DNA of 64,000 nt from sequence record LR756501.1; one strand, given 5' to 3'. The position numbers and the translations under genes were made by a program. Under the pieces are notes generated by a model. That model was not told where the DNA came from. It was given only the letters and a program-made list of their open reading frames with translations, and made no database searches. Positions 8,953-45,642 of the stretch are shown in pieces. The number at the start of each line of letters is the position of its first letter. Position 1 is the stretch's first letter.

Positions 8953-8956
8953 ATTA

Positions 8957-10180: not shown

Positions 10181-11642
10181 AATTATAATATTCGTTTATA
10201 GTAATATTGTTTAAGTAATTTTCTGGTTCGGTATATACAACAAACCTATTATGCTCTTCTTCCTTAATTGGTAAAGGGTATAGACAAACAGCTTTATGTT
10301 TTATTCTTCCTATCCACATTTCAGCGTTCATTCTATCTACACCAAATGAAAAAGGATCTGGTAATTTTTTTAAAAAATCAGAACTAGCCCACCAGAAATT
10401 ACCAGAATAATGTTGAGGACTCCATTTATTGTTATAATTACAACCAGCCAAATCACTACCATTATTAAGATGTTCAACACATTTTAACCAGTGTTCAATT
10501 GTGAAATGTTCCATTATATTTCTCCAATTTTCAACGTTCTTATAAGAATAATTGCCTACATAAAGACCAAAAGCGAAATTCTCTACGTCAGCGTCGTTAA
10601 CCCTAGTACACCCTTTTGTATGAAAATAGAGGTAATTACCGTCGTGGTTTAAGGCGTGTTGATGAAGTTTTTGAAGAGTGAATAATTCAAAAGTGTTACT
10701 ATTATCGTAATATATTTCGGTAGCGTATTTACTTATGATTTCCATATTATCGTTATCTATTTTATAAGTACCGTTATAATTATCCATTATAGTAACATAT
10801 AATTCAGATATATCTAATAATCCACTATTCTTTAATTTTTTCAATTGATCACTTACTATATCATTTATTTTATCGTAAAGATATATATGATAAAATATGT
10901 ATTTCTTTTTTCTAAATTTTTCGTAAACAGATTTCATTTCATCTGGTTTTATATAATGAAATGATATAGGATTTTTAAGATGACCCACGTTATCTATTTC
11001 CAGTCCTCCGTACTTTATACCTTCTTGAATATTATATTCATCGTAAAAAGAAGGATTTTGCGAATACATACCTAAAACATTAGTAGCATCAACGTTAGTA
11101 TATTTTTTAACAATATAAGCTATAGCTATATCCGCCCAATCGTAAGAAACATTTGAAAAATAAGTAGTTGGATTAGTTATATTTCTCCAATGTGCATTAA
11201 ACTCATCTATCTTTGGATATATTTTTTTCATTAAAGAATTACTCATGAAAAAACTGGCACCACCTGAAAATATTACAGTTTCTATTTTATCTATTATTAT
11301 TTTATCACGAACTTGACTTATTATAACATCTTCATTTCTATCAAAATTTTTTAAAGCATCTAAAAGACTGTCTTTGAATATTATATGATCACAACCTATC
11401 ATACAGTACCAATCAAATTCTGGACTAGCTTCAAACATTCTTTTCATCCCCAACTGTTGTTTCATGAAAGCACTACTATAATCTTCCCCTATACCTTCCA
11501 GTCTTATTAGATTTTCGTCTTGTTTATCGCCACCGAAAAAGAAAACATTATCAAAGTCTTTTGTCCAAGTGTTCTTACAAGCCATAAAGCGTTGTTTGAG
11601 ATTTATAGAAGTCATTATACCTATCGCTATATTATCTTTCAT
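10170..11642 (-). CDS. two-domain putative glycosyltransferase (fringe/GT31-like N-domain plus YFHTKG domain)
   Basis: TW..DF, SGGASF, DIAIA, ISFHY in N-domain; YLYFHTKG and HYSGNFWWA in C-domain. Confidence 0.6.
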   Translation of the reverse strand: MKDNIAIGIMTSINLKQRFMACKNTWTKDFDNVFFFGGDKQDENLIRLEGIGEDYSSAFMKQQLGMKRMFEASPEFDWYCMIGCDHIIFKDSLLDALKNFDRNEDVIISQVRDKIIIDKIETVIFSGGASFFMSNSLMKKIYPKIDEFNAHWRNITNPTTYFSNVSYDWADIAIAYIVKKYTNVDATNVLGMYSQNPSFYDEYNIQEGIKYGGLEIDNVGHLKNPISFHYIKPDEMKSVYEKFRKKKYIFYHIYLYDKINDIVSDQLKKLKNSGLLDISELYVTIMDNYNGTYKIDNDNMEIISKYATEIYYDNSNTFELFTLQKLHQHALNHDGNYLYFHTKGCTRVNDADVENFAFGLYVGNYSYKNVENWRNIMEHFTIEHWLKCVEHLNNGSDLAGCNYNNKWSPQHYSGNFWWASSDFLKKLPDPFSFGVDRMNAEMWIGRIKHKAVCLYPLPIKEEEHNRFVVYTEPENYLNNITINEYYNYDK

Positions 11643-12319
11643 CTAACTTCCTTTCTATTCACCCACTCTTGGTATTGGTGGTACCTGTTTTCGTTTTCGT
11701 CGTATATTTCACCTACGAATTTATAATCTTCCATCGGTGTAGGAAAAGGTTTAGAATATGGATGTGTTATCCATACAGAATCATGAGCCAACATATCATC
11801 TTTATATTTCTCAAAAATAACATTCCCTAAAAAATCTAAATCACCAAATTTATTAAATAAATCTAATTTCTTGTTTACCAACCATTTATTAATTTCATTA
11901 GATATATTGAAATCTTCATTTATTTTCAGACCGAACATGCCGCCGTTAACTTTATGTTCGTGGTGTGGATGATCTCTTAATATATGAAATGACTTATCTG
12001 ATTCAATCCACTCGTCCACTGCTAGTTTTTCTCTCATTGATAATCTACTATCTACGTCTCTACTAATAAATCTTTCAACACCGTAATGTGGTGTAAACCT
12101 CCAAAACATGCCTGGCATTGTACTATTTTCCATATTTATTAATTCAGCGTTATTGAATCTTTCGTATTCTTTGATCATAAAGTCTGGTACAGTACTATTA
12201 TAATAAACGTAAACTATCCAACCAGGATAAATTTTATCTGATAATTCCAAATTTCTTAATAATCCTGTTGTGTATTTAGGATCGGATCCGTATATGCTAA
12301 AACTTATAACTTTTTTCAT
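11639..12319 (-). CDS. conserved glycan-cluster protein (GT-A-like)
   Basis: KKVISFSIYG, MFWRF, FISRDVDSRLS.RE, HILRDHPHH. Confidence 0.55.
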   Translation of the reverse strand: MKKVISFSIYGSDPKYTTGLLRNLELSDKIYPGWIVYVYYNSTVPDFMIKEYERFNNAELINMENSTMPGMFWRFTPHYGVERFISRDVDSRLSMREKLAVDEWIESDKSFHILRDHPHHEHKVNGGMFGLKINEDFNISNEINKWLVNKKLDLFNKFGDLDFLGNVIFEKYKDDMLAHDSVWITHPYSKPFPTPMEDYKFVGEIYDENENRYHQYQEWVNRKEVR

Positions 12320-12984
12320 AATTTCTCAATTGTATTTGGTATTATACCAGCACCGTATAATTCTCTATTTTTAAACCATATAGCTCTATCTCCACCGTAC
12401 TCTATACATCTCTTTTCTGTTCTCACTTCCATAACTTTTATATTATGAGCGTTAACCACTTTATAACCAAATATTAAACAACGTGTCGCCATATCGTGGT
12501 CACATTCGTAGTATTTGAATTGACTATCGTACATTCCAATCTTTCTAAATATTTCCTTTCTATAAATACCAAAATTCATACAGTCGTGAAAACATATCCA
12601 TTGATTTTCGTAAGATTTATCTGCGTATTCTTCTAGTGTACCTCTGTTCCAATCGAATATATAAACGTCGTTACCGTCATTAAGCATGTTAATAACGTCG
12701 TCCCATTCGTTTATTAAGAGCACGTCATCGTTCCATTGAACTATCCATTCGTGTTTTGCTGCCTTTATTCCAATATTCATAAAACTAGGATAGGTGGATC
12801 TCCCGCCAATTTCAATGAAATTTATTCTTTCGTTATTTAGACTCTTAACGTATTCAATTGTTCCGTCAGTTGAACCTCCGTCTAATAGTACTAATTCTAT
12901 TTTATCAGATCTATCTATTGTGTTCTTAATAACCTCTTTGAGTAGGTCAAGTCTATTTAGAGTGCCTGTGACTATACTTAACAT
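12316..12984 (-). CDS. glycosyltransferase family 2
   Basis: LVLLDGGSTDGT, NIGIK.AK, QWNDD, IGMYD..F.YYECD. Confidence 0.85.
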   Translation of the reverse strand: MLSIVTGTLNRLDLLKEVIKNTIDRSDKIELVLLDGGSTDGTIEYVKSLNNERINFIEIGGRSTYPSFMNIGIKAAKHEWIVQWNDDVLLINEWDDVINMLNDGNDVYIFDWNRGTLEEYADKSYENQWICFHDCMNFGIYRKEIFRKIGMYDSQFKYYECDHDMATRCLIFGYKVVNAHNIKVMEVRTEKRCIEYGGDRAIWFKNRELYGAGIIPNTIEKL

Positions 12985-12988
12985 AATT

Positions 12989-15900
12989 TTATTTTCTTTT
13001 TATTAACATGCCTTGATAGTTAAATTGTCTTCCGTATAGTGTAAAGCTATCTCTAAAGAATCTCAAGTTCATTTTATCTGAAGCGTCACTATCAAATATT
13101 AATCTATTATTATGGTATATTTGGAATGGTAGATTTCCTTTAACAAAGTCTTCACATATATCTTGATTACTCTTTACATAATCAATTTGTGGTCTTGATG
13201 TAGGGGACACAACAACTTGTGGTTTAGGTGTTTCTTTACTAATAATATTAGGTAAAGACATATCATTTTTAAAATGTTTATCAACCTCTGGATTAGTTTT
13301 ATTGATATTTTCTTCACTGGCGTCTGATATAGTATTCCAAGTTTTAATAAAAGTTGGCATAAAGATATAGCCTTTAAATTCTTTCAATATATCGTCGTGA
13401 AAATAATTATCTATTGGTTTTTCTTCATCTTTTGTTATCCCAATAATCTTTTCAAATAATTTATTCTTATTATTCAAAATCATAGCACAACACATATAAG
13501 CTTCACTCACTTTATAAATATAATTCCCAACAAATATTGGCATTTTACAACTACTAAAATGGGCACCTAAATACATTATATCCCAATCTTTCGGAACGTT
13601 CTCAGAATAATGTTCAAACCTTTTGTTAAAATCGTCACAAAATACTATATCGTCTTCAAATATAGCAATCTTATCGTAACCCATTCTCAAAGCGTCTTTT
13701 ACGACTCCAACGTGACTCCTCAGAGTGGCTATTTGAGAAGATTTGAGATCGTCTCCTAAATTTTTACCATCTACAGCGTTGAACCTTTTAAAAGATATAC
13801 TTATTTTATCAAATTCGTCGTTCATGTGATTTAATCTATCTTCTCTTCTTTTAAGATTTATAAGATAAACGTTATCAACGAATTTATTTAATTTGGATAA
13901 AGAACTAAACGTTGTTGTTTTTGGTGTTATTTTTTTCTCATTTCTTTCTACTACACCTTCAAAAATAACCTTTTTAGTTTTTGTTTCTTCTCTCAATTTT
14001 GAACTTTGTACAAATACGTAAGGTCTTCTAACTCTGTTACTTTCTTTATCTTCGTGTGATACACCGTATGTTCTAACATCTGAAAAATGATAGTGATAAA
14101 TTTTAACATCTTTAGATGGATTGGATATTTTATATCCAGCTTTTTGGAATTCGTGAGCAATTGCGTTATCACATCCTGGCATTCCCATTTTAAAATCGCC
14201 GTCTAATTTCCCCATATTACCTAAGAATATCCAGGCGTCTTGACTACATTCTATGTCGTAATGTTCTGTTTTAAATGGTTGTAAGTTTGTTATATTCCAT
14301 CTTGAAAGACAATATACGTCGTCGTGAGTTATATTATTTAAAATTAATTCTATATTTTCTTCATCTATATAACAATCTGAATTTAATAATATATTTAAAT
14401 CGTCTTGTTTCGTATTAAAATTAACAATATTGAATAAATCCCCAAAAGTGGGCTGTATATTAAATAAATTAACTTTTATCATTTTAGAATTAGATGATTT
14501 ATATTCATCCGAACATAGAAGATATATTCTATCTACTTTTTCATTGGAAATTAATTTATTTAAACAATATTCTATTTCTTTGCTTCTTTTTTCTGTCTGT
14601 GCTTGAAAATAATTAAAATAAACGTTCACCTTTAACTTCTTATTACTGTTTTTATTATCAGATGATACTATTTCATTTTCACTTTTTAAATAACTACCAT
14701 TAATCATTCTACCACCTTGAACGTTACCAACAAATAAGTTACCGTCTTTAAATTTATGAAAATAAATATCTTCGTTCTTTCTTTTTAAGAAAGCTAAATT
14801 CTTATTCCCAGACGATTCTAATATTATATTAAATAAATCTATTTTAGCTTTAACCCCAATTGACCAATTAGCGTGAAAAGCTTTAATGTTTTTAGGTATA
14901 TTGCTGAACAATTCACCGTCCCACACTTTCCCACCGTTAATCATACTAATATTAAATATATCGTTAGATAATAACTTGTATTTAATTAAATCATTATTTA
15001 ATCTCATAGCTGTTTGATCTTCAGGATATTCATCGTATTTCCTCATACATTCTTCTATAAAATGTAAAGACGAATTATTTGCTCTCATTATAAAAAATCC
15101 AGCGCAGAGATCATCTATATCTCTTTGAAAAGCGGCGTCGTAATCCCCCAGTTCGTATTTTAATTGTTCTATTGATTTGTCTAAGAATATAACGTCAGCG
15201 TCTGCGAAAACAAAACATTCTCCCCAGCATTCTTTTATTGTTTGAAGTATAAATTCTAATTTCTTGAACATGGAATCTTTCCAACCATTATCCATGAAAT
15301 TTCCACCACCAATTTGTTCGTATTTTTCTGGTATTAGATCGTATTCGTTTATAGTATCAACTGACGGTTTTAAATAATCTTTATATAAGATACCGTGCGA
15401 ATCTGAGTAAAATGTTAATAATCTTGGTTTTTCATTTTTCAATCTCAGAAATATTTTTTTACACATACCATCTAATGAGAAGTATTCGTCATAAATTTCT
15501 GATATTTTAGATCTCATATAATTTATTCTCTCTTGTGAAATATTATCAATAATATCTTTTAAATGCCCTAATTCGTCAGCGTGTACTAAAACACATATAT
15601 CAGCCCAATTTATCTCTTTAGTATAAGGAAGCCATAGGGTATCATACACGTAAACTGGTATAGATCCTAATTGCATAGATTCATATAAACGAAAACTAGT
15701 AGGACCGTCACCCCTTGGGCATAAGGTGAATACTGATCTTTCAGTTACGTCAATGAATTTTTTCTCTTTTTCGATAGATATTTCTGGTGACCACTTGAAC
15801 ATATCGTAGTAATAATTTTCGTCACCTTCTAATTTTTTCTGTAATTCTCTTCTTAGTAAATGTGTATCTGAACCAATAAAAGAACAAAATACGTCCCTTT

Positions 15901-16357
15901 TTCTATTGGTCTTAGGTTTTTTTATTTTTGAACATATAAGAGGTATAGGTATATAATTGTTACTTTTATGTTTTTGATATATTTTTCCACTACCACTAAA
16001 TACTAAAGTGTTTTTAGGTAATATTTCTTCAGGAGCTCTTTCGTGTTGGCAAATTGTAAAATATTTTAAATCTGGATCTAAACCATTCAGAAATACTTGC
16101 AACTCTTCGTCTCTCACTATATTATTATATATGTTTGTCCAGTATATAGGTAAATATATTCTATCAGACTCTAATTTATTTTTAATGAAATAATTAAAGA
16201 AATATTCCTCCATGTAATAACCCTCGTGGTATGGTGGATAAGTAGGATATTTTGGTACAGGTCTAAATCTTTCCGTAGATTTAATTATTTTTTTCTGGTA
16301 ATTATTCATTTCTAAATATTTATTTTTTATTTTTGTTAAGTATCCAGCTGCTCCCAT
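12989..16357 (-). CDS. multidomain glycosyltransferase (exostosin/GT47-like + nucleotide-diphospho-sugar transferase + unknown + GT25-like)
   Basis: SVFTLCPRGDGPTSFRLYESMQLGSIPV; FADADVIF...CAGFF...EDQ...FHANW; YLINLKRREDR...FNAVDG...IFEDD; true start may be 16309. Confidence 0.75.
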   Translation of the reverse strand: MGAAGYLTKIKNKYLEMNNYQKKIIKSTERFRPVPKYPTYPPYHEGYYMEEYFFNYFIKNKLESDRIYLPIYWTNIYNNIVRDEELQVFLNGLDPDLKYFTICQHERAPEEILPKNTLVFSGSGKIYQKHKSNNYIPIPLICSKIKKPKTNRKRDVFCSFIGSDTHLLRRELQKKLEGDENYYYDMFKWSPEISIEKEKKFIDVTERSVFTLCPRGDGPTSFRLYESMQLGSIPVYVYDTLWLPYTKEINWADICVLVHADELGHLKDIIDNISQERINYMRSKISEIYDEYFSLDGMCKKIFLRLKNEKPRLLTFYSDSHGILYKDYLKPSVDTINEYDLIPEKYEQIGGGNFMDNGWKDSMFKKLEFILQTIKECWGECFVFADADVIFLDKSIEQLKYELGDYDAAFQRDIDDLCAGFFIMRANNSSLHFIEECMRKYDEYPEDQTAMRLNNDLIKYKLLSNDIFNISMINGGKVWDGELFSNIPKNIKAFHANWSIGVKAKIDLFNIILESSGNKNLAFLKRKNEDIYFHKFKDGNLFVGNVQGGRMINGSYLKSENEIVSSDNKNSNKKLKVNVYFNYFQAQTEKRSKEIEYCLNKLISNEKVDRIYLLCSDEYKSSNSKMIKVNLFNIQPTFGDLFNIVNFNTKQDDLNILLNSDCYIDEENIELILNNITHDDVYCLSRWNITNLQPFKTEHYDIECSQDAWIFLGNMGKLDGDFKMGMPGCDNAIAHEFQKAGYKISNPSKDVKIYHYHFSDVRTYGVSHEDKESNRVRRPYVFVQSSKLREETKTKKVIFEGVVERNEKKITPKTTTFSSLSKLNKFVDNVYLINLKRREDRLNHMNDEFDKISISFKRFNAVDGKNLGDDLKSSQIATLRSHVGVVKDALRMGYDKIAIFEDDIVFCDDFNKRFEHYSENVPKDWDIMYLGAHFSSCKMPIFVGNYIYKVSEAYMCCAMILNNKNKLFEKIIGITKDEEKPIDNYFHDDILKEFKGYIFMPTFIKTWNTISDASEENINKTNPEVDKHFKNDMSLPNIISKETPKPQVVVSPTSRPQIDYVKSNQDICEDFVKGNLPFQIYHNNRLIFDSDASDKMNLRFFRDSFTLYGRQFNYQGMLIKRK

Positions 16358-16865
16358 TTCTAATTATATTTTCTTTACCGAAAAATTCGTCAACAGCTTT
16401 AATCACACCAGGAAAAGCTTCAATGTAATCGTGCCCTGCTATAATTCCGTTTTGTTTTAATTTTGGGTACCACCAAGTAATATCATTCTTAATGCCTTCA
16501 TATTCGTGGTCAGCGTCAATGAAAATAAAATCTAAAGAGGAGTCTTCGTAATTTTTAACTATCTCCTTTGAGAAACCTCTTATTGGATTGATAATGTGTT
16601 TAATAGGTTCTATATTCTTTAAATATTCTTCGTACACATTAACGCTTACGTTATCTAAATTCCAATTAAAATCCCATTTATCAATAGAATCAAATTTTAT
16701 TTGTTTGCCAGAATTTATAATCTCAACAGCCATGTATATAGTTGAGCAACCAAAAAAAGATCCTAATTCAACGAAATGTGAATTGCTAGGAAAATGATTT
16801 ACCATTTCTGTGTAAACGTTTTCAAAATTGAAAAACCCAAATATATTTTTATAATAATGTTCCAT
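16320..16865 (-). CDS. class I SAM methyltransferase (Methyltransf_24-like)
   Basis: VELGSFFGCS, FIFIDADHEY, GGII-like NGIIAGHDY. Confidence 0.85.
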   Translation of the reverse strand: MEHYYKNIFGFFNFENVYTEMVNHFPSNSHFVELGSFFGCSTIYMAVEIINSGKQIKFDSIDKWDFNWNLDNVSVNVYEEYLKNIEPIKHIINPIRGFSKEIVKNYEDSSLDFIFIDADHEYEGIKNDITWWYPKLKQNGIIAGHDYIEAFPGVIKAVDEFFGKENIIRNGSSWILNKNKK

Positions 16866-16873
16866 AATTGTTA

Positions 16874-17662
16874 TTATTTTTTAATTAATTCTTTTATTGT
16901 ATTACTCCATCTTGAAGTAAAAATAGGATTATTCACATGATATTGTTCTATAAGTTTTTTAGAGCTCGTGTGCTCAACTATTTTTTTTAGTTTATAATCA
17001 AATTTACTATGAATGAGATCTAAACCTAAGATAATATTTTTTAAATTATATTTAGTTTTACATATCAAAGAATATTCCATTTCTTCATATGATCCTATAT
17101 TGTATATCTCATCAAAATATCCCACTAAATCTATTAATTTTCTATGGAAAATAATTGGTCCGATATTTAATATATTTCTTTCGAAGAATTCCCCAGATGA
17201 TATTATTTTACCTCCAATTGGATTAATAGATGAACCTCCTGAAAATTTAGAACTGATCATATCTATATAATTATTACCATTTTCAATTCCATTAAATCCA
17301 TCACGACAACCAATCAATCCTAATTCTTCTTTATATACGTCATGAATTTTAATAATGTTATCTAAAAAATTAACATCTTTTAACACCATATCGTCTTGAA
17401 ATATTATTAAATAGTCAGTATCAAATTCTTTCATTAATATATTATTGGTCCTTAATTGAAATAAATTATCTGTGTGAATTTTCCTGATATTACCCTTTAA
17501 ATTAATAGACAATTGATCAAATATTTCTTCTGAATTATCTGTACATCCATCAAATATAAAAATATAATTTGTTGGTATTTTTATATTTTCAATTAATCCA
17601 TTAATGATCTCGTCTATCATATGAGATTTGTTGTGTATTGGATAACCTATTGTAAATTTCAT
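16874..17662 (-). CDS. glycosyltransferase family 2
   Basis: IFDGCTDNS, IIFQDD, VGYFDE. Confidence 0.8.
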   Translation of the reverse strand: MKFTIGYPIHNKSHMIDEIINGLIENIKIPTNYIFIFDGCTDNSEEIFDQLSINLKGNIRKIHTDNLFQLRTNNILMKEFDTDYLIIFQDDMVLKDVNFLDNIIKIHDVYKEELGLIGCRDGFNGIENGNNYIDMISSKFSGGSSINPIGGKIISSGEFFERNILNIGPIIFHRKLIDLVGYFDEIYNIGSYEEMEYSLICKTKYNLKNIILGLDLIHSKFDYKLKKIVEHTSSKKLIEQYHVNNPIFTSRWSNTIKELIKK

Positions 17663-17672
17663 GTTTCAAATG

Positions 17673-18251
17673 TTATTTTTTTATAAAAAAAGCATTGTAA
17701 TAAGAGTACACATTCAAATCTAGATTGTTATTATTACAATATTCATCTACACATAGTTTAACCCCAGGAAAACTGGGATGATCGTAATCGTGAAAACAAA
17801 TTAAACCACCTGTTTTCACTTTAGGAAACCAAATATCTATCTCCTCTTTTAATTGCCCGTATTCGTGTGTATTAACTGGTGTAGAAGAATCTATATAAAT
17901 ACAATCAAAAAAATTATCATCAAATTCTTTATATACTACTAAACTAGAACCTAGTATAAAGTTAAACCTTTTACCAAATTCTTTTTCTAACTGTGCAAAT
18001 CTATCTGGACTTTGAACATAAATATCTAAACTGTAAACAGTAGAATTATCAAATTCATTTAATATTAAATCAGATAATCCTCCTAATCCACATCCGATTT
18101 CAATAAAATTAAAATCTTTACTTTTATCTATATACTTATCTATAATCGTACACACAGGCAAACCAGATGATGTATGATTCCAATATTTATAGATATAATC
18201 TTTTACGGTTGATTTTTTAAAAGTGTAATCGTCATTATGTTTAATTATCAT
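17673..18251 (-). CDS. class I SAM methyltransferase (Methyltransf_24-like)
   Basis: IEIGCGLGG, CIYID, GGLICFHDY. Confidence 0.85.
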   Translation of the reverse strand: MIIKHNDDYTFKKSTVKDYIYKYWNHTSSGLPVCTIIDKYIDKSKDFNFIEIGCGLGGLSDLILNEFDNSTVYSLDIYVQSPDRFAQLEKEFGKRFNFILGSSLVVYKEFDDNFFDCIYIDSSTPVNTHEYGQLKEEIDIWFPKVKTGGLICFHDYDHPSFPGVKLCVDEYCNNNNLDLNVYSYYNAFFIKK

Positions 18252-18262
18252 GGTGTTTGTTT

Positions 18263-19654
18263 TTATTTTTTGTAGAAAACGTAAAATTGATGATCAGATT
18301 TATCTTCACCCGATGAAAATATTACGTTGTTTTTCTGGCAACATATTATATTATCTAGTAAATACTTCAATTTTTCTTCACCCACTAGTGATACAATTCT
18401 ATTATCTATATTCTTAATGTAATCTTTCTTGTAACCTATTTTCAAAAAACAATTGAAATATTCGTACCACATATCTTCTATTATATATATACCTCCACTA
18501 TTCAAATGTGGAAACACATTAAATAAACTAACTATCTGATCATCCAATAAATGACTACCATCGTCTATAACAAAATCAAAACTGACTGGGTTTGAAATGA
18601 AAAAATTCTCTATCTGATCCTGTTTACCTTGATCGACTATGAATATTTCAATTTTATCATCGTTCATATGTCTTAAATCTAAAATGTCCCATCCGTAGAT
18701 TTTAGAATTTTCAAAATATTCTTTCCACATTTTTAATGACTCCCCGTTAAATACACCTATTTCAAGCATATTCATATTTTTAATATTTTTCATATCCCTC
18801 AATATCATATCGTAAAACGGAACGTAATTATGACCGTACGGATGTTTAAATGACTTATCTGTTTGATATTTACTAGCAACGTTCTCTAATTCTTTCATCT
18901 CTTTTTCTTTATTTTTTAATAGATTATTATATTTACAATAAATATATATTGGAGCGTCAATAATCATAGATTTATTCAAATTAAACAGCACGTCCATACA
19001 AAATTCGTAATCTTCAGCCCCTTTATAACTTACATCATCCCAATTTGGTGAATAAGATAATTCTTTTCTATCTTTCCACGAAATTGTATCTAAAACCTCT
19101 CTCTTTACAGCTAAAGGTCCACAAATAGCGTTAAATTTTGTAAATTCACTACCGTAAGAATTAGTTTGACCCAAACAATCCATTATATTATTATTTGGAA
19201 AATATTTTTTATAAATGGTATCTGAATGTATTATATTTATTTTATCTAATTCAATCTCTTTAAAATCAATTATAATATCATTAAAAGACATAACCCCAGA
19301 ATGATTCAAATGTGAAATATCGTAATTTTCGAAAAAATATTTAATTATCTCTACTCTTCTAGGGTGAGGAACGTCATCAGAATCTTGATATATGATTATA
19401 TCACCTTTGCAATAGTTCTTAGCCAATTGTCTGTTAGGACCAGGATTTAAAGATTCATTCTTTATAATGATAACATCATATTCTTTTTCTATATTATTTA
19501 TAATATCTATTGTTTCTTTATCACACGATTTATAATCTGATATAGAAATAATAATTTCATCTGGTTGTACTCTTCCAATTCTTGTATATCTCAATATTCT
19601 GGTCAAATACTTAATATGAAAAGGTGTAGTGGGTATAAATATCGACGTCGTCAT
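18263..19654 (-). CDS. GT2-like glycosyltransferase fused to SAM methyltransferase
   Basis: N-domain IIYQDSDD.PHP.R; C-domain TDK..HPYGH, LEIGVFNGES, VIDDGSH, GGIYIIED. Confidence 0.75.
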   Translation of the reverse strand: MTTSIFIPTTPFHIKYLTRILRYTRIGRVQPDEIIISISDYKSCDKETIDIINNIEKEYDVIIIKNESLNPGPNRQLAKNYCKGDIIIYQDSDDVPHPRRVEIIKYFFENYDISHLNHSGVMSFNDIIIDFKEIELDKINIIHSDTIYKKYFPNNNIMDCLGQTNSYGSEFTKFNAICGPLAVKREVLDTISWKDRKELSYSPNWDDVSYKGAEDYEFCMDVLFNLNKSMIIDAPIYIYCKYNNLLKNKEKEMKELENVASKYQTDKSFKHPYGHNYVPFYDMILRDMKNIKNMNMLEIGVFNGESLKMWKEYFENSKIYGWDILDLRHMNDDKIEIFIVDQGKQDQIENFFISNPVSFDFVIDDGSHLLDDQIVSLFNVFPHLNSGGIYIIEDMWYEYFNCFLKIGYKKDYIKNIDNRIVSLVGEEKLKYLLDNIICCQKNNVIFSSGEDKSDHQFYVFYKK

Positions 19655-20469
19655 AAATTACTTAAATATTTTTCGTACATGTAATCCTCAGCAATCATAT
19701 AATTTTTAGCAACTTCGAAATTCTTCCTAGCGTACTCTAATTTTAAATTATACAACTCAGGACTTATTCCGTTCACTATATTTTTCAATTCGTTCACATT
19801 ATTAAATACCAACATTCCCCTTTCGTCAAAATAATTTCCAATAGACGGACAACCCCAATAAATAGGAATTGTCCCTGTTGCAAAACAATCAATCAACTTC
19901 TCTGTGAAATAATAATCCTTCTTTGTGTTCTCAACCACAATAGAAAACATATAATCCTTTAAACCATCTAACTTTTCAGGTAAATCATTAAACCCTCTGC
20001 CGTAAAGATCACATTTTATTTGCCCATTTCTAATTTCGTTCACGATATTATTACGTAGAGCGTGTCCATCTGTCCAATTCTTGTTAGAAGCTATGATAGA
20101 TATTAATTTAGTTTTAGGATAAATATATTGCTCTTCTGGTCTTATCCAACAACCACCTGTGGGTAGAAATTTGAATTTACTATCCATTTCTAATAAATCT
20201 CTATTGTTAGTGAATATTATATCAAATGCTTTATAGTTAGTTTTTATCCACTCGTGCTGGTAAGCACTAACTGCTGGGGATTCGAGTAACCAAGCTATTT
20301 TTGTTTTAACTCTATTGTTAACTCTTGGTAAAGAACCATCTGTATATATGGCTATATCTTCGTTTCCAACTATAAGATTTCTGTTCCATTTAATATATTT
20401 AGATTGCTGAATAGCAGTGCTATAATCACCGTGAGCGAATAATATATCGTCTATTTTTATTGGTACCAT
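19651..20469 (-). CDS. GT10 (fucosyltransferase-like) glycosyltransferase
   Basis: YMFSIVVEN...YFTEKLIDCFATGTIPIYWG. Confidence 0.8.
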   Translation of the reverse strand: MVPIKIDDILFAHGDYSTAIQQSKYIKWNRNLIVGNEDIAIYTDGSLPRVNNRVKTKIAWLLESPAVSAYQHEWIKTNYKAFDIIFTNNRDLLEMDSKFKFLPTGGCWIRPEEQYIYPKTKLISIIASNKNWTDGHALRNNIVNEIRNGQIKCDLYGRGFNDLPEKLDGLKDYMFSIVVENTKKDYYFTEKLIDCFATGTIPIYWGCPSIGNYFDERGMLVFNNVNELKNIVNGISPELYNLKLEYARKNFEVAKNYMIAEDYMYEKYLSNL

Positions 20470-20567: not shown

Positions 20568-21359
20568 ATGGTAAAAAATTTTGATAAATTCGTAAGAGAG
20601 GCGTTAGATAATCCTCAAGTTATAGCCAAACCTAAAGTAAAAGGTGGCCCTGATCCACGTAGATTCAATAGTATTATTGATTACACTTATCTTCGTGAAG
20701 ACGCTAACATAGATAAGATTGAAGAGATATGCCAACAGGCTAAAGAGAACGGATTTTATAGTGTTTGTATAAGACCTGATTTCGTATCATACGCTGTTAA
20801 TTTCTTAGAAGGAACAAATGTTAAAGTGTGTACTGTTATTTCTTTCCATAAAGGCGAAGACAAAACACAAGAAAAAGTTGTAGAAACACAAAAAGCTATA
20901 TCTAATGGTGCTGACGAGATTGATATGGTTATGAATTGGAAACTTTTACAGAAATGGTCAAAAGAATCAGACGACGAAAAGAAGAAAGACATGGAACAAA
21001 AGTTATTTGACGATATAAGAAAAGTAGCTGATGTATGCCACGGATCGGATAGTGTTGTATTAAAAGTTATTATTGAGTCTGGCGAATTGACTTTGGATCA
21101 AGTGAAAAAGGCTTGTGAACTTTGTACCAAGGCTGGTGTAGATTTTGTTAAGACTTCAACTGGTTACGCTACAAAAGGAGCTGAAATAGATAAAGTTAGA
21201 TTTATGAGAAGTATATTACCAGACCATATTAAAATTAAAGCCAGTGGTGGTGTAAGAACTTTACAAGATATAGAAGCCTATGTTAACGCTGGTGCCGATA
21301 GAGTAGGAACTTCCTCAAATCCAGCTATTATAGCAGTGGGACAACAAGGAGGTTACTGA
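20568..21359 (+). CDS. deoC: deoxyribose-phosphate aldolase with N-terminal extension
   Basis: IDYTYL, GADEIDMVMN, LKVIIESGEL, DFVKTSTG, IKASGGVR, RVGTSS. Confidence 0.95.
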   Translation: MVKNFDKFVREALDNPQVIAKPKVKGGPDPRRFNSIIDYTYLREDANIDKIEEICQQAKENGFYSVCIRPDFVSYAVNFLEGTNVKVCTVISFHKGEDKTQEKVVETQKAISNGADEIDMVMNWKLLQKWSKESDDEKKKDMEQKLFDDIRKVADVCHGSDSVVLKVIIESGELTLDQVKKACELCTKAGVDFVKTSTGYATKGAEIDKVRFMRSILPDHIKIKASGGVRTLQDIEAYVNAGADRVGTSSNPAIIAVGQQGGY

Positions 21360-21655
21360 TGATAAAGAAATTCCACACATATATAAAAGAAAACGTAGAT
21401 GACTTAGATCCATACGGTGAAGAGGATTGGAACGATCCTTCAGTACAAGATTTTGAAATAGGAGATAAAGTAGAATGTATAGATAGTCAAGGCACATATT
21501 TAGAACAAAATAAAGTTTATACTGTGAAATGGGTAGTTCAAAAAAGAGTACTGGTTGGCGGATATTTATATTTAGAAGACGAACCAATTGTAAATCTTGA
21601 TGGGCGTGTGATTTCAGAAATAGCGTATAAAATGAGAAGATTTAAAAAGACATGA
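21359..21655 (+). CDS. hypothetical protein (DPYGEEDW motif plus SH3/KOW-like domain)
   Basis: DLDPYGEEDWND, FEIGDKVECID. Confidence 0.6.
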   Translation: MIKKFHTYIKENVDDLDPYGEEDWNDPSVQDFEIGDKVECIDSQGTYLEQNKVYTVKWVVQKRVLVGGYLYLEDEPIVNLDGRVISEIAYKMRRFKKT

Positions 21656-25188: not shown

Positions 25189-25225
25189 TTGCAGAAAACT
25201 CTGTTAAGTTTGCTGTTCGTTTTCT
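25189..25225 (-). ncRNA. ACAGCAA-stem element in the DUF2828 5' UTR
   Basis: AGAAAAC-GAACAGCAA-ACTTAACAGA-GTTTTCT-GCAAA; perfect 7-bp stem. Confidence 0.7.
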
Positions 25226-25386
25226 TCTAATTCTATTTCTTCATCTACCCAAAAGTATTTATCTCTGGGACAATAACCCTTTGATTTATACTTGGTTTCT
25301 ACTTCACTTTGGGCTTTTCTTTTACTATTTCTACCCTCCTGATAAACCTTATCTTTGTGGGTATATTTCCTATGAGTCTTAGCCAT
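25204..25386 (-). CDS. small basic hypothetical protein
   Basis: 60-aa K/R-rich ORF between rtcB and DUF2828. Confidence 0.6.
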   Translation of the reverse strand: MAKTHRKYTHKDKVYQEGRNSKRKAQSEVETKYKSKGYCPRDKYFWVDEEIELEENEQQT

Positions 25387-25387
25387 T

Positions 25388-26428
25388 TTAAATTTCTGTA
25401 AATTTAACTGTTACAATAGGTTTAGTTTGAGTTACTTTTTTAAGAAATGGTTGATCTTTTAAAAGAGTGTCTGTGCTTTTGTAAGCGAAGTCGAACTCTT
25501 GTAAGTAACCATTTGGGAATTTTCCATCTCTTCCCAACATTTCTACGAAATTTTGCTCATATATTTTCTTTTCTTTTTTCTTTAATGAGTGCCAGTGTTT
25601 CAGAGTATCAGTTCTGCTGAGTTTTCTCCCAGCTCCGTGTGCACACGACCAAAGGTTTTCACTCATATCAACCATCGGTTTTGGTGCCACTATTAAAGTT
25701 CCTCTAGTCATTGATAACGGAATAGCGACTTGAGTTCCATCTAATACTGTTGCTCCTTTTCTGTGAATAGCTTTCTTACCATCTACTGTGAAAACATTGT
25801 GAATTGAATCATTCACTTCGTAATTCACTTTATTGATATAACCATTGTGAATAAGGAATTCAAAAGTTTTTGTTACAAATTGTAATCTTCTTGATGTTCC
25901 AGAATTAACAACCTTTGAATATTTTTCATTTAATTCATCAGTCCACATTTCAATAGGTAAACTGTTTCCTTTTACTCCTTCATCAAAGTTGAAATCATCT
26001 ATCAATTTTAAGAAATATTGATACATATAAATTCCAAGATTTCTTGTCCCTGTGTGGCAGATAATATAAGTATAATCATCGTCACCGTCTTCAATTGAGA
26101 GGAAGTGATTTCCTCCACCAAGTCCTTCATCTGTGAATGTTTGACTTACTTTGTTAAATGCGTTATAGTGTTCAAATTTATTAAAAGGTTTTCTCCAAGC
26201 TTTTGAAGGGAATCTTAAAAACATAACACCACATCCAACGTCTTTACCTGTAACAAGAGGGAAGAATTTATCGGTTGAGGAAAATGTAACTCCAACAGGA
26301 ATAGCTCTCTCTGAACAGTAGTGAATATCAGGGAAAACGCAGATTTCGTCCATCTCATTTTCTGTTGCCAGTATGAGGTCGGTTGCGTTTTTTTCTATTT
26401 CGTCTTTATTACAAAAATACTTAATCAT
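25388..26428 (-). CDS. rtcB: RtcB family RNA 3'-phosphate/5'-OH ligase (compact)
   Basis: PDIH, GKDVGCG, GGGNHF, HTGTR, HN, HRKGAT, HGAGR. Confidence 0.9.
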   Translation of the reverse strand: MIKYFCNKDEIEKNATDLILATENEMDEICVFPDIHYCSERAIPVGVTFSSTDKFFPLVTGKDVGCGVMFLRFPSKAWRKPFNKFEHYNAFNKVSQTFTDEGLGGGNHFLSIEDGDDDYTYIICHTGTRNLGIYMYQYFLKLIDDFNFDEGVKGNSLPIEMWTDELNEKYSKVVNSGTSRRLQFVTKTFEFLIHNGYINKVNYEVNDSIHNVFTVDGKKAIHRKGATVLDGTQVAIPLSMTRGTLIVAPKPMVDMSENLWSCAHGAGRKLSRTDTLKHWHSLKKKEKKIYEQNFVEMLGRDGKFPNGYLQEFDFAYKSTDTLLKDQPFLKKVTQTKPIVTVKFTEI

Positions 26429-26438
26429 AGTACCCTCC

Positions 26439-26555
26439 TTACCCTTGTCTCTGTTTGAACTTAGGGTTCTTTTTACATATTACATACATAACACCGTGAC
26501 GTTTCACGATCTTACAATCTTCACTTCTTTTCTTAATTGATGCTCTTACTTTCAT
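26439..26555 (-). CDS. rpmJ: 50S ribosomal protein bL36
   Basis: [38 protein letters not shown] (38 aa); AGGAGGT SD just upstream of ATG 26555. Confidence 0.95.
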
Positions 26556-26566
26556 TTTATACCTCC

Positions 26567-26662
26567 TTAGAAAAATTTTGCGCCGTTTAATATTAAAATA
26601 ACTGTTATCACAATTACTATAATAACACCAACGCTCCACTGTCCTTTTTCTTTTTCGTTCAT
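26567..26662 (-). CDS. small single-pass membrane peptide (31 aa, not in ORF track)
   Basis: Manual translation [31 protein letters not shown]. Confidence 0.55.
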
Positions 26663-26664
26663 TT

Positions 26665-26856
26665 TTATTCTTTATCAAATGGTTTATACTCTTCCCATCC
26701 CATTAATTCGTGATGTTGTCTCATACAATCTTCCCAATCAATCCCCTCAATGGTTCTTATAATTTTAGCATCATCACCAACCCAAATTTTTGTGTTAGGA
26801 TCATTTTCTGTAACAACTGATACAGAAACTTTATCTTGCCAAACTTCTACTTTCAT
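26665..26856 (-). CDS. hypothetical protein
   Basis: 63-aa ORF in operon. Confidence 0.6.
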
Positions 26857-27149
26857 TCGTCTAAAATTTTAATAACTTTACCATATATTGCTTTGGTCCA
26901 TCCATTGATGCCACCGCGATTATTACCAATCAAAACTCCTCTTTTAGGATTGGTTGCTTTTACTAAGTGTGTGTAATAGTTACCTCTGACTTTACAGAAA
27001 ACTATATCACCATCTTTTACCTTAGTCCAGTCTGTCGGTTCTAATACGACAGGTTGCTTAGACTTTAGAATTGGTAACATCGAGTTACCTGCTTCCTTAG
27101 ATGTGATGGTTTCACCACTTAGTAATTTTTCAACCTTCCAATTTAACAT
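26853..27149 (-). CDS. S24/S26 peptidase-like small protein
   Basis: GNSMLPILKS, GDIVFCK, HLVK. Confidence 0.55.
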   Translation of the reverse strand: MLNWKVEKLLSGETITSKEAGNSMLPILKSKQPVVLEPTDWTKVKDGDIVFCKVRGNYYTHLVKATNPKRGVLIGNNRGGINGWTKAIYGKVIKILDE

Positions 27150-28283: not shown

Positions 28284-29486
<1,203 letters not shown>

Positions 29487-35450: not shown

Positions 35451-37685
35451 TTATTTGTTTATAAATAATAACTGCCCGTCCTTTACATCTACAAAAATTG
35501 CGTTATCTTTCATAACCTTATCTTCTAACATTAGTCCAGAAAGCACATTGATAACCTTCTCCTGAATTACCCTTTTAACAGGTCTCGCCCCAAACTGAGG
35601 ATCATATCCCCACTCAGCAATCTGTTTCAAAGCTTCCTCAGAAGCATTCATATCTATACCATTCTTCTTTAACATCTTCATTATACCATTAAACTGCATC
35701 TTAACAATATCCAAGATTTCACTCTTAGTGAGTGGTTGAAAAACAATAGTCTCATCAATTCTATTAAGAAGTTCAGGCCTAATTGTTCTCCTTAACATCG
35801 CAATAACTTCTTCTTTCGTTTTCTTTATAACATCGTTCCTTGTTTCATCAGTCATTCCTTGCATGTTAGACTGAATAATATTTGAACCAAGATTAGAAGT
35901 CATTACTATAATAGTATTCTTAAAATCAACAAGATAACCTTTATTGTCTGTTAATCTACCATCATCTAATACCTGTAAAAGTGTATTAAAGACATCAGGA
36001 TGGGACTTCTCTATTTCATCAAGGAGAACTACACTATAAGGTTTTCTCTTCACTGCTTCAGTAAGTTGTCCACCTTCTTCATATCCAACGTAACCTGGAG
36101 CAGACCCAATAAGTTTACTAGCCGAACTCTTATCTTGATATTCAGACATATCAATTCTAACCATAGAATTTTCGTCGTTGAAAAGGAATTCAGCCAAAGC
36201 CTTAGCCAATTCCGTCTTTCCGACACCTGTGGTGCCAAGGAATATAAATGAACCGATAGGTTTCTTTGGATCTTGAAGTCCAGTTCTACTTCTACGAATA
36301 GCATCTGAAACTGCTTTAATAGCTTCATTCTGTCCAATAACCCTCTTGTGTAATTCTTTTTCAAGGTTTACAAGTCTTTCTTTTTCACTACCTTTTAATT
36401 TATTAACAGGAATTTGACTTACATCAGATACAACAATAGCAATTTGATCAGCGTCAACTACTTTTTCTTTTGCTTCAGCATCCAATTTTAATTTAGAAGA
36501 CGCTTCATCGAGAATATCAATAGCTTTATCAGGTAAAAACCTATTAGAAATATAACGTTTAGAAAGTTCAACTGCAGCAACCACAGCTTCATCTTTAATA
36601 GTTACTTTATGGAAAGTTTCATACTTGCCTTTCAGACCCATCAATATGGCAATGGCTTCATCAACTGTTGGTTCTTCGATGGTAACAGTTTGGAATCTAC
36701 GTTCGAATGATTTATCCTGCTCGAAATATTTATGGTATTCTTTGGTAGTGGTAGCACCAATAACTAACAACTCACCTCTTGATAAAAGAGGTTTAAGAAT
36801 ATCAGCACCATCCATCGAACCTTCACCACCATTAGTGCCAATGAGGCTATGAATCTCATCAATAAAAAGAATAATCTCACCGTTGGAAGCAATAATTTCG
36901 TTAAAAACGCCTTTAAGTCTTTCTTCGAATTCCCCTTTATATTTAGCACCAGATACAATATTTGTGAGGTCAAGTGAATAGATTTGTTTAGTTTTCAGAC
37001 TATCTGGAACGTCACCACTAACAATTTTATGTGCTATACCAAGAGCCACAGCAGTTTTACCAACTCCAGATTCACCTATGATAAGTGGATTGTTTTTGGT
37101 TCTCCTCGAAAGAATTTGGAGAATCCTTTTAATTTCATCGTCTCTTCCAATAACAGGATCGAGTTTACCAGCCTTTACTAATTCGTTAAGATTCCTTGTA
37201 TATTTATTGGCGGCGTTGATTGCTATATCAGCATCGGGTGAAGTGATTTTAGCGCCTTTTCTAAGATCTTCAAGTCCAGATTTAATCCCTTCAATTGTAA
37301 TCCCTTCTTTCACAAACTCTTTAGCTAAAACATCTGTTCCACCAAGAATACCCATAAGAATATGCTCAACCGATACAAACTCGTCGCCGTATTCAAGAGA
37401 ATAGGTAATAGCTCTATCTAAAGCCTGATTAGAATAAGGGGACAGGTGTTCTCTACTGATGAGATCTCTAGGATAATATTTTATAATATTATCAACTATT
37501 TTCATAAGGAGATCAACATCAACATTCATTTTCTTGAGAATGTATGGAGCAACATTATCGTCAACTAACATAATCCCTTTAAGGATATGTGAAGTTTCGA
37601 TAGATTTGTGTCCTTTAACCTGGGCAATCTCTCTAGCCTTTTGGATCGCGGTTTTTGCTTTAACTGTGAACTTTGTAAAATCCAT
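35451..37685 (-). CDS. clpB: ClpB-type Hsp100 chaperone lacking the M-domain
   Basis: Two Clp N repeats, LDPVIGRD, GESGVGKT, FLPDKAID, GTTGVGKTELAKALAEFLF, RIDMSEY, GARPVKR. Confidence 0.9.
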   Translation of the reverse strand: MDFTKFTVKAKTAIQKAREIAQVKGHKSIETSHILKGIMLVDDNVAPYILKKMNVDVDLLMKIVDNIIKYYPRDLISREHLSPYSNQALDRAITYSLEYGDEFVSVEHILMGILGGTDVLAKEFVKEGITIEGIKSGLEDLRKGAKITSPDADIAINAANKYTRNLNELVKAGKLDPVIGRDDEIKRILQILSRRTKNNPLIIGESGVGKTAVALGIAHKIVSGDVPDSLKTKQIYSLDLTNIVSGAKYKGEFEERLKGVFNEIIASNGEIILFIDEIHSLIGTNGGEGSMDGADILKPLLSRGELLVIGATTTKEYHKYFEQDKSFERRFQTVTIEEPTVDEAIAILMGLKGKYETFHKVTIKDEAVVAAVELSKRYISNRFLPDKAIDILDEASSKLKLDAEAKEKVVDADQIAIVVSDVSQIPVNKLKGSEKERLVNLEKELHKRVIGQNEAIKAVSDAIRRSRTGLQDPKKPIGSFIFLGTTGVGKTELAKALAEFLFNDENSMVRIDMSEYQDKSSASKLIGSAPGYVGYEEGGQLTEAVKRKPYSVVLLDEIEKSHPDVFNTLLQVLDDGRLTDNKGYLVDFKNTIIVMTSNLGSNIIQSNMQGMTDETRNDVIKKTKEEVIAMLRRTIRPELLNRIDETIVFQPLTKSEILDIVKMQFNGIMKMLKKNGIDMNASEEALKQIAEWGYDPQFGARPVKRVIQEKVINVLSGLMLEDKVMKDNAIFVDVKDGQLLFINK

Positions 37686-42329: not shown

Positions 42330-42351
42330 TAATTCAATTATTTATTTTTTG

Positions 42352-42424
42352 AGCCGGTGAGAGGACTTGAACCTCCAACATCTACTTTACGAAAGTAACG
42401 TTCTCCCAATTGAACTACACCGGC
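42352..42424 (-). tRNA. tRNA-Thr(CGT), isolated from the array
   Basis: Full cloverleaf: GCCGGTG/CACCGGC, loop TT-CGT-AA, TTCAAGT. Confidence 0.93.
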
Positions 42425-42431
42425 TTAATTC

Positions 42432-42770
42432 TTAGAAATCAATATTAAGATAATCACCGAACCATCTACTCTTCTTAACCACTTTTATAATTGGTTTCTC
42501 CATCCATTGTTTTCTGTTTTTAGAAACCAATTTCCAGCTTGGGTGACGAACTTTTTTTGGAGATGGTGTCCAAATAGTCAAATTTGGACTTGGTGAATAT
42601 CTCCAGAATTTTAAAGTCCCGTAGGATTTTCTTTCGTCATTTTCTCCTCTGTGATAACCACAACGTGAACAGTGAATCTCACCTTTTTGTTCGAGATAAA
42701 TCTTTCTTGAACGGTTATAGACATATCTGTTATCAGTAATGTCCATTTCTACTTTACATTTGTAACTCAT
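42432..42770 (-). CDS. hypothetical protein
   Basis: 112-aa ORF, CSRCGYHRGEN...PSWKLVSK.RKQW. Confidence 0.6.
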   Translation of the reverse strand: MSYKCKVEMDITDNRYVYNRSRKIYLEQKGEIHCSRCGYHRGENDERKSYGTLKFWRYSPSPNLTIWTPSPKKVRHPSWKLVSKNRKQWMEKPIIKVVKKSRWFGDYLNIDF

Positions 42771-42854
42771 AGGTTTTTCGATTAGTTTTTAATACTTACC
42801 GAAAAACCTCTCCTTTCTTATTCATAACTGTATATATTTTATTTTAAAGTTATA

Positions 42855-43760: not shown

Positions 43761-43769
43761 ATCTTTTTA

Positions 43770-44306: not shown

Positions 44307-44529
44307 ATATGCTATATCCTTGAATAATATAAACTTTTACTGGTAAAGGGTTTACTTTTTTAGTATTAAACCATCTATTACGACCATTGACCCTATCAAT
44401 CAATAATTGTTTAGTTAAATAAACACCCTTGTAAAATTCAAAAGCTTGTTGTTCAGTTTCAAATTCTGGAACCACATCAACATATTTACTAAGACCTAGA
44501 TATACGTTCTTTATTTTCATTATACTCAA
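44299..44529 (-). CDS. hypothetical protein
   Basis: 76-aa ORF. Confidence 0.5.
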   Translation of the reverse strand: MSIMKIKNVYLGLSKYVDVVPEFETEQQAFEFYKGVYLTKQLLIDRVNGRNRWFNTKKVNPLPVKVYIIQGYSIYG

Positions 44530-45634: not shown

Positions 45635-45642
45635 TGTTTTTG

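Follow-up and report, generated by a model that had tools for sequence, protein, structure and literature searches.

The 64,000-nucleotide (nt) stretch of sequence record LR756501.1 analysed here (the window, to which all positions refer unless stated otherwise) encodes the ribosomal protein bL36 on its minus strand, at 26439..26555, within the genome of a huge phage. This is apparently an unreported virus-encoded ribosomal protein, through which a known class gains a new member. The gene derives from a Bacteroidota bacterium by an old acquisition; a small subclade of huge Mahaphage-type phages retains it, and strong purifying selection acts on the protein. It is led by a Shine-Dalgarno (SD) sequence that is anomalous both for the phage and for the host phylum, a point that goes beyond the first-pass annotation, which had been made from the letters alone. 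We consider it probable that the phage protein is a functional copy of the host-lineage gene, which would enter the 50S subunit of the host, and whose SD-led translation would be tied to ribosomes with a free anti-SD sequence.

The product matches the Pfam family Ribosomal_L36 (PF00444) over residues 1-38 of 38, with 77 bits against a cut-off of 26.1 (expectation value, E, 1.2e-21), and scores 63 bits against the NCBIfam model TIGR01022 rpmJ_bact, whose cut-off is 22.7. Its termini, MKVRAS... and ...KQRQG, and its basic core for binding ribosomal RNA (rRNA) are retained, as judged by reading the sequence and by a column comparison with 98 homologs. Translation of the plus strand of 26439-26555 gives only noise. 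The features of the gene and its leader are as follows.

26439..26555, minus strand: bL36 (rpmJ-like) coding sequence, 38 amino acids (aa) plus stop, identified by PF00444, TIGR01022, its relatives and the ratio of nonsynonymous to synonymous substitution rates (dN/dS)
26561..26568, minus strand: SD of bL36, AAGGAGGT, read from the sequence, 5 nt before the ATG and overlapping the stop of the 31-aa open reading frame (ORF)
26567..26662, minus strand: 31-aa hydrophobic, membrane-type ORF from the ORF list, directly 5' of bL36 in another frame
26439..26678, minus strand: mechanical 79-aa ORF from the ORF list, with a TTG start at 26678, not a real gene

The start of bL36 is the ATG at 26555 and its stop codon is 26439-26441. 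The first-pass annotation had placed a 38-aa bL36 at 26439-26555, hidden within a mis-started ORF, behind a strong SD and directly upstream of rtcB, and each of these statements holds. The TTG of the 79-aa ORF lies 41 codons before the true start and masks the ATG, and the gap from the bL36 stop to the rtcB start is 10 nt, with the stop overlapping the SD of rtcB. The Pfam match in the 79-aa ORF is confined to its last 38 aa; its N-terminal extension overlaps the 31-aa ORF, and the upstream part is not conserved in two related contigs described below (L007 and L001). The 31-aa ORF, for which an NCBIfam search gave no family match, is lineage-specific filler, and the flank that holds it is swapped for unrelated sequence in both contigs.

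The window matches part of LR756501.1 exactly; this is an unannotated 'uncultured phage' record of 735,411 base pairs (bp) with a duplicate, LR756503.1, and the 12 kilobases (kb) round bL36 are 100% identical to both. The window has 31% guanine plus cytosine (GC), dense coding on one strand and no N. This 735-kb genome, manually curated and circular, belongs to the Mahaphage clade, is predicted to have a Bacteroidetes host and was the largest phage genome published as of 2020 (Al-Shayeb et al. 2020, PMC7162821). The locus is shared by independent assemblies (IMGVR_UViG_3300028283_000494, ERZ4201038 and SRR12676970), in all of which bL36 is flanked by an S24-like ORF on one side and a Ro60-like gene on the other, whilst the surrounding small ORFs vary. 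The relatives and the upstream anchor are listed here.

108-kb IMG/VR contig (L006/L007): bL36 100% identical, rtcB present and 96.5% identical, purA 94% identical
ERZ4201038 (L001) and SRR12676970 (L002): bL36 97% identical, rtcB absent with three small ORFs instead
Flanks in L001/L002: Ro60-like protein 73%, DUF4842 protein 63% and S24-like ORF 87% identical
26853..27149, minus strand: S24-peptidase-like ORF, 98 aa, the conserved upstream anchor, with a weak PF00717 match below the Pfam cut-off

Copies of the S24-like ORF, 87% identical, stand upstream of bL36 in L001, L002, L006 and L007. The 89%-identical cellular sequence P0004 and the homolog P0009 are found in secY-(map)-infA-rpmJ-rpsM-rpsK-rpsD-rpoA operons; the phage locus has none of the cellular secY-infA-rpmJ-rpsM neighbours. 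A contig that is cellular or chimeric at this locus, the main danger named at the outset, is contradicted by the identical position of the gene in independent assemblies and by this lack of a cellular operon, and the viral context is upheld by the curated circular phage record and by synteny in IMG/VR and the other assemblies. Around more distant Ro60-like relatives, including contigs of 248 and 482 kb, no bL36 was found within 8 kb.

Comparison among these phages shows strong purifying selection on bL36 in the viral lineage. Between the window and L007 the gene shows 3 synonymous differences and no amino-acid change. Between the window and L001 there are 14 synonymous steps and a single amino-acid change (His20 to Asn), with a proportion of synonymous differences (pS) of 0.68 and a dN/dS of ~0.012, synonymous sites being near saturation. 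The flanking proteins are 63-87% identical to their L001/L002 counterparts, and the sequence just 5' of the bL36 start is unrelated in the three lineages. The GC content of the gene is 33%, compared with 31% for the window, and the cellular genes nearest to it share 76-79% of its nucleotides. Judged by these comparisons, bL36 is a long-standing, selected resident of the phage genome, and a recent pick-up is excluded.

The first-pass annotation had also remarked on a resemblance to Bacteroidota bL36, which the comparisons support. The best matches among solved structures are the Bacteroidota chains 9i5t and 7jil (Flavobacterium johnsoniae), and the best named sequences among 603 database homologs are all from Bacteroidota, several of them annotated as 'type B'. 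The score against the NCBIfam type B model NF002021 is 69 bits, with a cut-off of 70, and the closest named homologs carry the type B annotation. In a maximum-likelihood phylogeny of 38 columns, the phage protein is nested inside the Bacteroidota-type clade with 98/95 support against the outgroups. Among named cellular proteins, those of Flavobacteriales come closest (Fluviicola 89.5%, Crocinitomix and Dokdonia 86.8%; 84-89% overall). As to the donor class, identity favours Flavobacteriales and topology loosely favours Bacteroidales that bear Cys27, a 38-column tree resolving no class. Among the 98 homologs, Met23 is the sole rare residue of the phage protein, which is otherwise near the Bacteroidota consensus. 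Several database sequences (P0001, P0005, P0006 and P0008) hold internal tandem duplications of 10-16 residues, which may be assembly artefacts or real repeat variants.

The first-pass annotation had described bL36 as rarely reported from viruses, and the literature agrees. Mizuno et al. (2019, PMC6375957) compared 106 ribosomal profiles, including PF00444, with isolates and 424,225 viral contigs and reported 14 ribosomal proteins; L36 occurs there only in the profile list and in E. coli control data, and no viral L36 is reported. The ribosomal proteins given by Al-Shayeb et al. (2020, PMC7162821) are S4, S1, S21 and L7/L12 only, and the accessible part of their supplement holds no L36, which is a weak absence. 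Later papers on the ribosomal-protein sets of phages do not mention bL36, and a full-text literature search gave, among the matches listed, no paper coupling 'ribosomal protein L36' with phage terms. In GenBank, 15 of 50,697 phage records contain a bL36-like match, two of these being LR756501.1 and its duplicate. All five of the other bL36-bearing records inspected (MT835508.1, MT836419.1, OR844994.1, OR846589.1 and CAKLQF020000004.1) hold full cellular secY-infA-rpmJ-rpsM-rpsK-rpsD-rpoA operons and are cellular contamination or mislabelled bacterial contigs. Among 2.9 million IMG/VR contigs, searched with degenerate DNA patterns for bL36 starting MKVRAS[IV]KK or ending PKxKQRQG only, one intact bL36 outside a cellular context was found, that of the 108-kb relative, and the rarity is accordingly a lower-bound statement. 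Two other IMG/VR contigs (L019 and L025) have bL36 beside infA at the contig end, which are cellular flanks.

Further L36-like sequences were observed in these searches. A frameshifted Bacteroidota-type bL36 remnant on a phage-like contig (L018:7175-7282, plus strand, IMGVR_UViG_3300025858_000656) has in-frame TGA codons instead of MKVRAS; it represents a recoded gene or else a second acquisition that has decayed. An N-terminally truncated, zinc-type L36-like tail (L023:3864-3959, plus strand, IMGVR_UViG_3300006131_000339) overlaps the end of a 62-aa ORF and lies just 3' of terminase, portal and head-morphogenesis-like genes. The ENA contig ERZ1426829, of 3456 bp, holds two L36 genes 0.5 kb apart among small unannotated ORFs, without infA or rpsM; one of them, P0003, is 89% identical and has His20 and Cys27, and this contig may be a third phage-type bL36 context.

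The translational signal of bL36 is the second unusual property of the gene. The duplex of its SD with the anti-SD, at -12.5 kcal/mol, exceeds in strength that of every other start in the window (both strands, ORFs of 25 codons or more), and that of rtcB, at -11.6 kcal/mol and identical in L007, is the fourth strongest. SD-like motifs at the first start are otherwise near the random level in the window (4 of 64 minus-strand ORFs, versus 2.4 expected at random positions), which fits a Bacteroidota host. Across the genes of LR756501.1 of at least 60 aa, a duplex of -11 kcal/mol or stronger is found in 14 (first start) to 21 (any early start) of ~980, or 1.4-2.1%, and this small fraction includes bL36, rtcB and a second ribosomal protein gene of the phage, for bS21, which lies outside the window.

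26434..26440, minus strand: SD of rtcB, AAGGAGG, read from the sequence and overlapping the bL36 stop at 26439-26441
LR756501.1 542927-543127 (L064:12267-12467), plus strand: bS21, second ribosomal protein of the phage, 66 aa, PF01165 at 52 bits, Tyr54 kept, with the SD caaaggaggataaATG at -11.8 kcal/mol

The three phage bL36 leaders, which stand on unrelated 5' flanks, reach -12.5 (window), -11.9 (L007) and -7.3 (L001) kcal/mol; the leaders of cellular Bacteroidota rpmJ are at or above 0 kcal/mol in ten cases of ten. A strong SD precedes rpmJ in 0 of 293 Bacteroidetes genomes, and in Flavobacteriia strong SDs are found on rpsU in 60-77% and on 0.2% of all genes (Jha et al., PMC7797042). The SD of the phage bS21 may have travelled with its gene; that of bL36 cannot have done so.

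Several of the strong genome-wide matches were rejected as false, since they arise from DPYGEE[ND]W, a coding motif shared by the members of a paralog family. The wider form of this motif, DPYGEE[NDQ]W, whose codons ggagaggagg mimic an SD, is found in the window at 21359-21655 (plus strand) and in many places in LR756501.1 (for instance 43860, 48028, 145582, 499642, 500835, 502495, 552104, 552409 and 574913), as well as in a homing-endonuclease-like ORF of L007. A 215-aa vWA-domain protein at 53956-54603 (minus strand) has an SD of -11.8 kcal/mol, among the four strongest in the window.

In cells, bL36 joins the 50S subunit late in assembly and lies buried there, organising 23S rRNA close to the factor-binding site. 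We propose that during infection the phage protein would enter the host 50S subunit at the normal bL36 site and, once incorporated, would maintain a complete, fully active ribosome pool when the host supply fails in the course of a long infection. Entry into the 50S subunit is suggested by the near-consensus sequence, by the exchange of bL36 paralogs in E. coli and by the short life of free bL36A, since in E. coli the paralogs are swapped on existing ribosomes and free bL36A is degraded (PMC9959377). The protein is non-essential, and in vitro translation falls by 30% when it is missing (PMC9959377). The ribosomal proteins that viruses encode are preferentially exchangeable ones (PMC6375957). 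The strong SDs on bL36, rtcB and bS21 in an SD-poor genome suggest that translation of all three is probably coupled to ribosomes with an exposed anti-SD. Ribosomes without bS21 have been proposed to have a free anti-SD and to translate SD-led messenger RNA (mRNA) better (Jha et al., PMC7797042; McNutt et al., PMC9976891), and in F. johnsoniae SDs are read by bS21-free ribosomes (PMC9976891; PMC7797042). A 50S completion or maintenance role for bL36 plausibly fits its RtcB-family and Ro60-like neighbours, and a subset of RtcB proteins is known to repair damaged 30S subunits (PMC9304027).

A more far-reaching version, which we regard as possible but doubtful, is that the SD-led phage genes (bL36, bS21 and the RtcB-family ligase) form a translational regulon that co-opts the anti-SD occlusion switch of Bacteroidota. 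These genes would then be translated efficiently only by 30S subunits that are bS21-free, immature, damaged or remodelled by the phage. If this were true, the state of the ribosome pool would itself switch on the factors for its completion and repair.

Several points weigh against the favoured reading, in which the phage protein enters host ribosomes and its synthesis is controlled through the SD. In the ribosome bL36 occupies a pocket of rRNA, and a further factor is presumed necessary for its exchange (PMC9959377), so that simple competition with the host protein is possibly slow. In some Bacteroidota classes, SDs also precede rpl genes of other kinds (PMC7797042), and the duplex energies given here are not on the scale of the published free_scan threshold. 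The Bacteroidota host is a prediction. In PHROG scans of 10 large window ORFs and 10 ORFs round bS21, only auxiliary functions and no capsid, portal or terminase were found, so that the viral identity of the genome rests on its publication, on the IMG/VR membership of its relatives and on gene content. Finally, rtcB is absent from the L001/L002 lineage, and the pairing of bL36 with RtcB is therefore not obligatory.

The genes downstream of bL36, together with a second ligase elsewhere in the genome, are as follows.

25388..26428, minus strand: compact RtcB-family RNA ligase, 346 aa, PF01139 at E 3.4e-25
25204..25386, minus strand: 60-aa basic ORF between rtcB and the Ro60-like gene, with a near-identical ORF in the same place in L007
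23711..25171, minus strand: Ro60/TROVE-like protein, 486 aa, the conserved downstream anchor, PF11443 DUF2828 and PF25043 DUF7788
LR756501.1 ~535458-536996 (L064:4798-6336), minus strand: second full-length RtcB, 512 aa, phrog_1075 at E 1.5e-112

In this order, bL36, the RtcB-like ligase, the 60-aa basic ORF and the Ro60-like gene constitute an RNA and ribosome quality-control neighbourhood, and bL36 and rtcB are very likely co-transcribed. The 346-aa ligase aligns with the phage's own 512-aa RtcB (E 2e-19), including the motifs PD.H, D[VI]GCG, GGGNHF, H[TS]G[TS]RN, HN and HGAGRK, which we take, from established RtcB biochemistry, to serve catalysis (metal binding and the guanosine monophosphate (GMP)-histidine). 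By these motifs the compact ligase appears to be catalytically intact. The 512-aa RtcB lies ~6 kb from bS21, so that each of the two ribosomal protein genes of the phage stands near an RtcB-family ligase.

The RtcB-like and Ro60-like proteins gave no sequence match to solved structures. The AlphaFold2 model of the Ro60-like protein (predicted local distance difference test score, pLDDT, 69; predicted template-modelling score, pTM, 0.61) shows helical-repeat and vWA domains at moderate confidence, and its top 8 Foldseek matches in the PDB are all Ro60/TROVE/Rsr proteins (E 3.5e-7 to 8.3e-6, template-modelling (TM) score 0.35-0.59), one of the eight being a Thermus phage protein. On this model, the DUF2828/DUF7788 protein probably has the Ro60 fold. 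Its gene lies downstream of bL36 in L001, L002 and L007; across the lineages the Ro60-like gene is the constant partner of bL36 and the ligase is optional. In the 108-kb relative the Ro60-like gene is split into ORFs of 156 and 344 aa by a 286-aa ORF with LAGLIDADG-like motifs (L007:7166-8026, plus strand), which is probably a mobile insertion and is absent from the window. At gathering thresholds Rfam gave only transfer RNAs (tRNAs), all at 42-50 kb, with neither a Y RNA nor any further structured RNA in the vicinity of the locus. A sigma-70 promoter and terminator scan, using a model unsuited to Bacteroidota promoters, stayed at background level.

The same neighbourhood could instead be a counter-defence module, in which bL36, the RtcB-like ligase and the Ro60-like protein rebuild ribosomes whose rRNA has been cleaved by an abortive-infection nuclease of the host or by the ribotoxin of a competitor. 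The ligase would reseal the rRNA, the Ro60-like protein would handle misfolded fragments and fresh bL36 would re-lock the repaired 23S region. The adjacency of the three genes and the second full-length RtcB some 6 kb from bS21 are in keeping with such a division of labour. Moreover, the best NCBIfam models of the ligase, PRK09588 and TIGR03073 release_rtcB, are of the RtcB2/PrfH-associated type, whose E. coli member reseals cleaved 16S rRNA in the 30S subunit (PMC9304027). However, the scores against these models (102 and 82 bits) are far below their cut-offs (407 and 272), and the ligase has no PrfH gene beside it, the bL36, 60-aa ORF and Ro60-like neighbours including no release-factor homolog such as the adjacent prfH that accompanies RtcB2. 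In addition, bL36 is a 50S protein while the substrates known for RtcB2 are found in 30S subunits, and L001/L002 hold bL36 and the Ro60-like gene without a ligase. We therefore consider ribotoxin counter-defence unlikely.

The conserved linkage of bL36 to a Ro60-like gene, rather than to any translation gene, and the unusual translational signal on bL36 would also suit a role away from the ribosome. There the small basic protein might chaperone RNA for the RNA-repair proteins encoded beside it, might regulate them, or might act as a decoy of some host factor. Neofunctionalised copies normally diverge, yet the phage protein stays near the Bacteroidota consensus throughout, including all of the basic residues that face rRNA, as selection at the ribosomal site predicts. 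An extraribosomal role is accordingly quite improbable.

The zinc ligands of bL36 raised a different possibility. Alignment to the E. coli and Thermus thermophilus chains places Ser at Cys11 and Phe at His33/His32 and keeps Cys14 and Cys27, so that the phage protein lacks two of the four ligands, as had been noticed at first reading, and is no zinc-ribbon (C+) bL36, which has Cys11, Cys14, Cys27 and His32/33. In the first-pass annotation this loss had been connected with zinc limitation: the phage would supply a zinc-free bL36 for ribosome building when zinc is scarce, much as zinc-free bL36 paralogs serve zinc economy in E. coli (PMC9976891). That idea did not survive the comparison with 98 clean 38-aa Bacteroidota-type homologs, of which 63 have SCNF at positions 11/14/27/33 and 22 have SCCF, the exact phage pattern, and in which the first Cys and the His are missing from every sequence, cellular-operon copies included. 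Because these homologs show the same state, the missing ligands were inherited from the donor lineage and are no phage adaptation. The host's own bL36 would already be zinc-free, so that the phage copy brings no zinc advantage, and the zinc-binding paralog that coexists in Zur-regulated zinc sparing is not represented in the comparison. Zinc sparing is thus largely refuted and we regard it as very improbable; by its residues, the phage protein is of the Bacteroidota type and predicted to be zinc-independent, with Ser11/Phe33 as the norm of the phylum.

Contamination, an assembly chimera or a recent and functionless neutral pick-up, for which the contaminated 'phage' records (five of five inspected) and the infA-flanked contig ends of L019 and L025 provide precedents, can hardly account for a gene without cellular operon neighbours, in the same syntenic position in independent assemblies, with a dN/dS of ~0.012 at near-saturated synonymous change, a phage-like composition and at most 79% nucleotide identity to a cellular gene. 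Synteny and selection refute this reading, unless four independent datasets share an assembly error.

Other features of the window were recorded alongside the locus. A tRNA array at 42351-50262 (minus strand) comprises 16 (ARAGORN) to 18 (Rfam) genes, with isoacceptors that include three Gly, four Arg, four Thr, two Ala and two Val. The purA gene at 28287-29486 (plus strand), noted above in the 108-kb relative, encodes a full-length adenylosuccinate synthetase (PF00709, 457 bits), and a Clp/AAA+ type ATPase of 744 aa is encoded at 35451-37685 (minus strand; phrog_4871 'ATP-dependent protease', E 8.9e-250). A run of glycosyltransferase, methyltransferase and radical-SAM genes at 2900-20469 (minus strand), including a 1122-aa multidomain protein and syntenic at L001:14755-20117 (ERZ4201038), suggests a modification with glycans, of the surface or of DNA.

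Virus-encoded ribosomal proteins blur the line between virus and cell, and reveal which parts of the ribosome are worth viral control. Those known so far are mostly exposed and loosely bound (bS21, bL12), and bL36 differs from them. If the phage bL36 is a functional copy that completes host 50S subunits, as we favour, it suggests that completion or re-completion of the large subunit limits the long infections of very large phages. The locus also offers a handle on the purpose of the rare SDs of Bacteroidota and on the use that phages make of bS21-dependent anti-SD occlusion. In addition, it is a warning against pipelines that discard contigs with a 'ribosomal protein' as contamination (PMC13037316).

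Compared with known systems, the phage protein is closest to cellular Bacteroidota bL36 (7JIL chain f; rpmJ of Fluviicola and Crocinitomix), with which it shares the length of 38 aa, Ser11, Cys14 and Phe33. Unlike these, it is encoded outside a secY-infA-rpmJ-rpsM context, has a strong SD and carries Met23, which is otherwise almost unseen. In the E. coli exchange of bL36A and bL36B (RpmJ/YkgO), a second bL36 likewise replaces the resident one on existing ribosomes, and, as is YkgO, the phage protein is of the zinc-free class; unlike in E. coli, no zinc-binding partner is expected in the phage host and no link to zinc regulation is seen. The presence of an RtcB-family ligase near a Ro60-fold protein recalls the bacterial rsr (Ro60)-Y RNA-rtcB operon, and the best family models of the ligase, though below their cut-offs, recall the RtcB2-PrfH pair. 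The phage locus differs from both in that no Y RNA was detected and neither PrfH nor RtcA is encoded beside the ligase, and in that it brings a ribosomal protein gene, which is part of neither system, into an RNA-repair cluster.

The nearest viral counterpart is the bS21 of freshwater phages that infect Bacteroidota (Mizuno et al. 2019; Chen et al. 2022), which is similarly small, captured from the host lineage, under purifying selection and of the exchangeable type. That protein is a solvent-exposed initiation protein of the 30S subunit, whereas bL36 is buried in the 50S. The proteins detected in these surveys do not include bL36, whose profile had been searched. The presence of both in LR756501.1 is unusual, since more than 99% of the viral contigs bearing ribosomal proteins had one ribosomal protein (Mizuno et al. 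2019, PMC6375957). With regard to control, the strong SDs on the phage bS21 and bL36, where few genes have one, resemble the SD autoregulation of rpsU (bS21) in Flavobacteriia, although in cells it is rpsU or rpsR that carries the SD, and rpmJ never does (0 of 293 genomes). As bL36 has no contact with the anti-SD, direct autoregulation is impossible and its SD could do no more than link expression to the condition of the 30S subunit. The SD-gating logic that we propose for the phage genes is the one that Flavobacteriia apply to rpsU.

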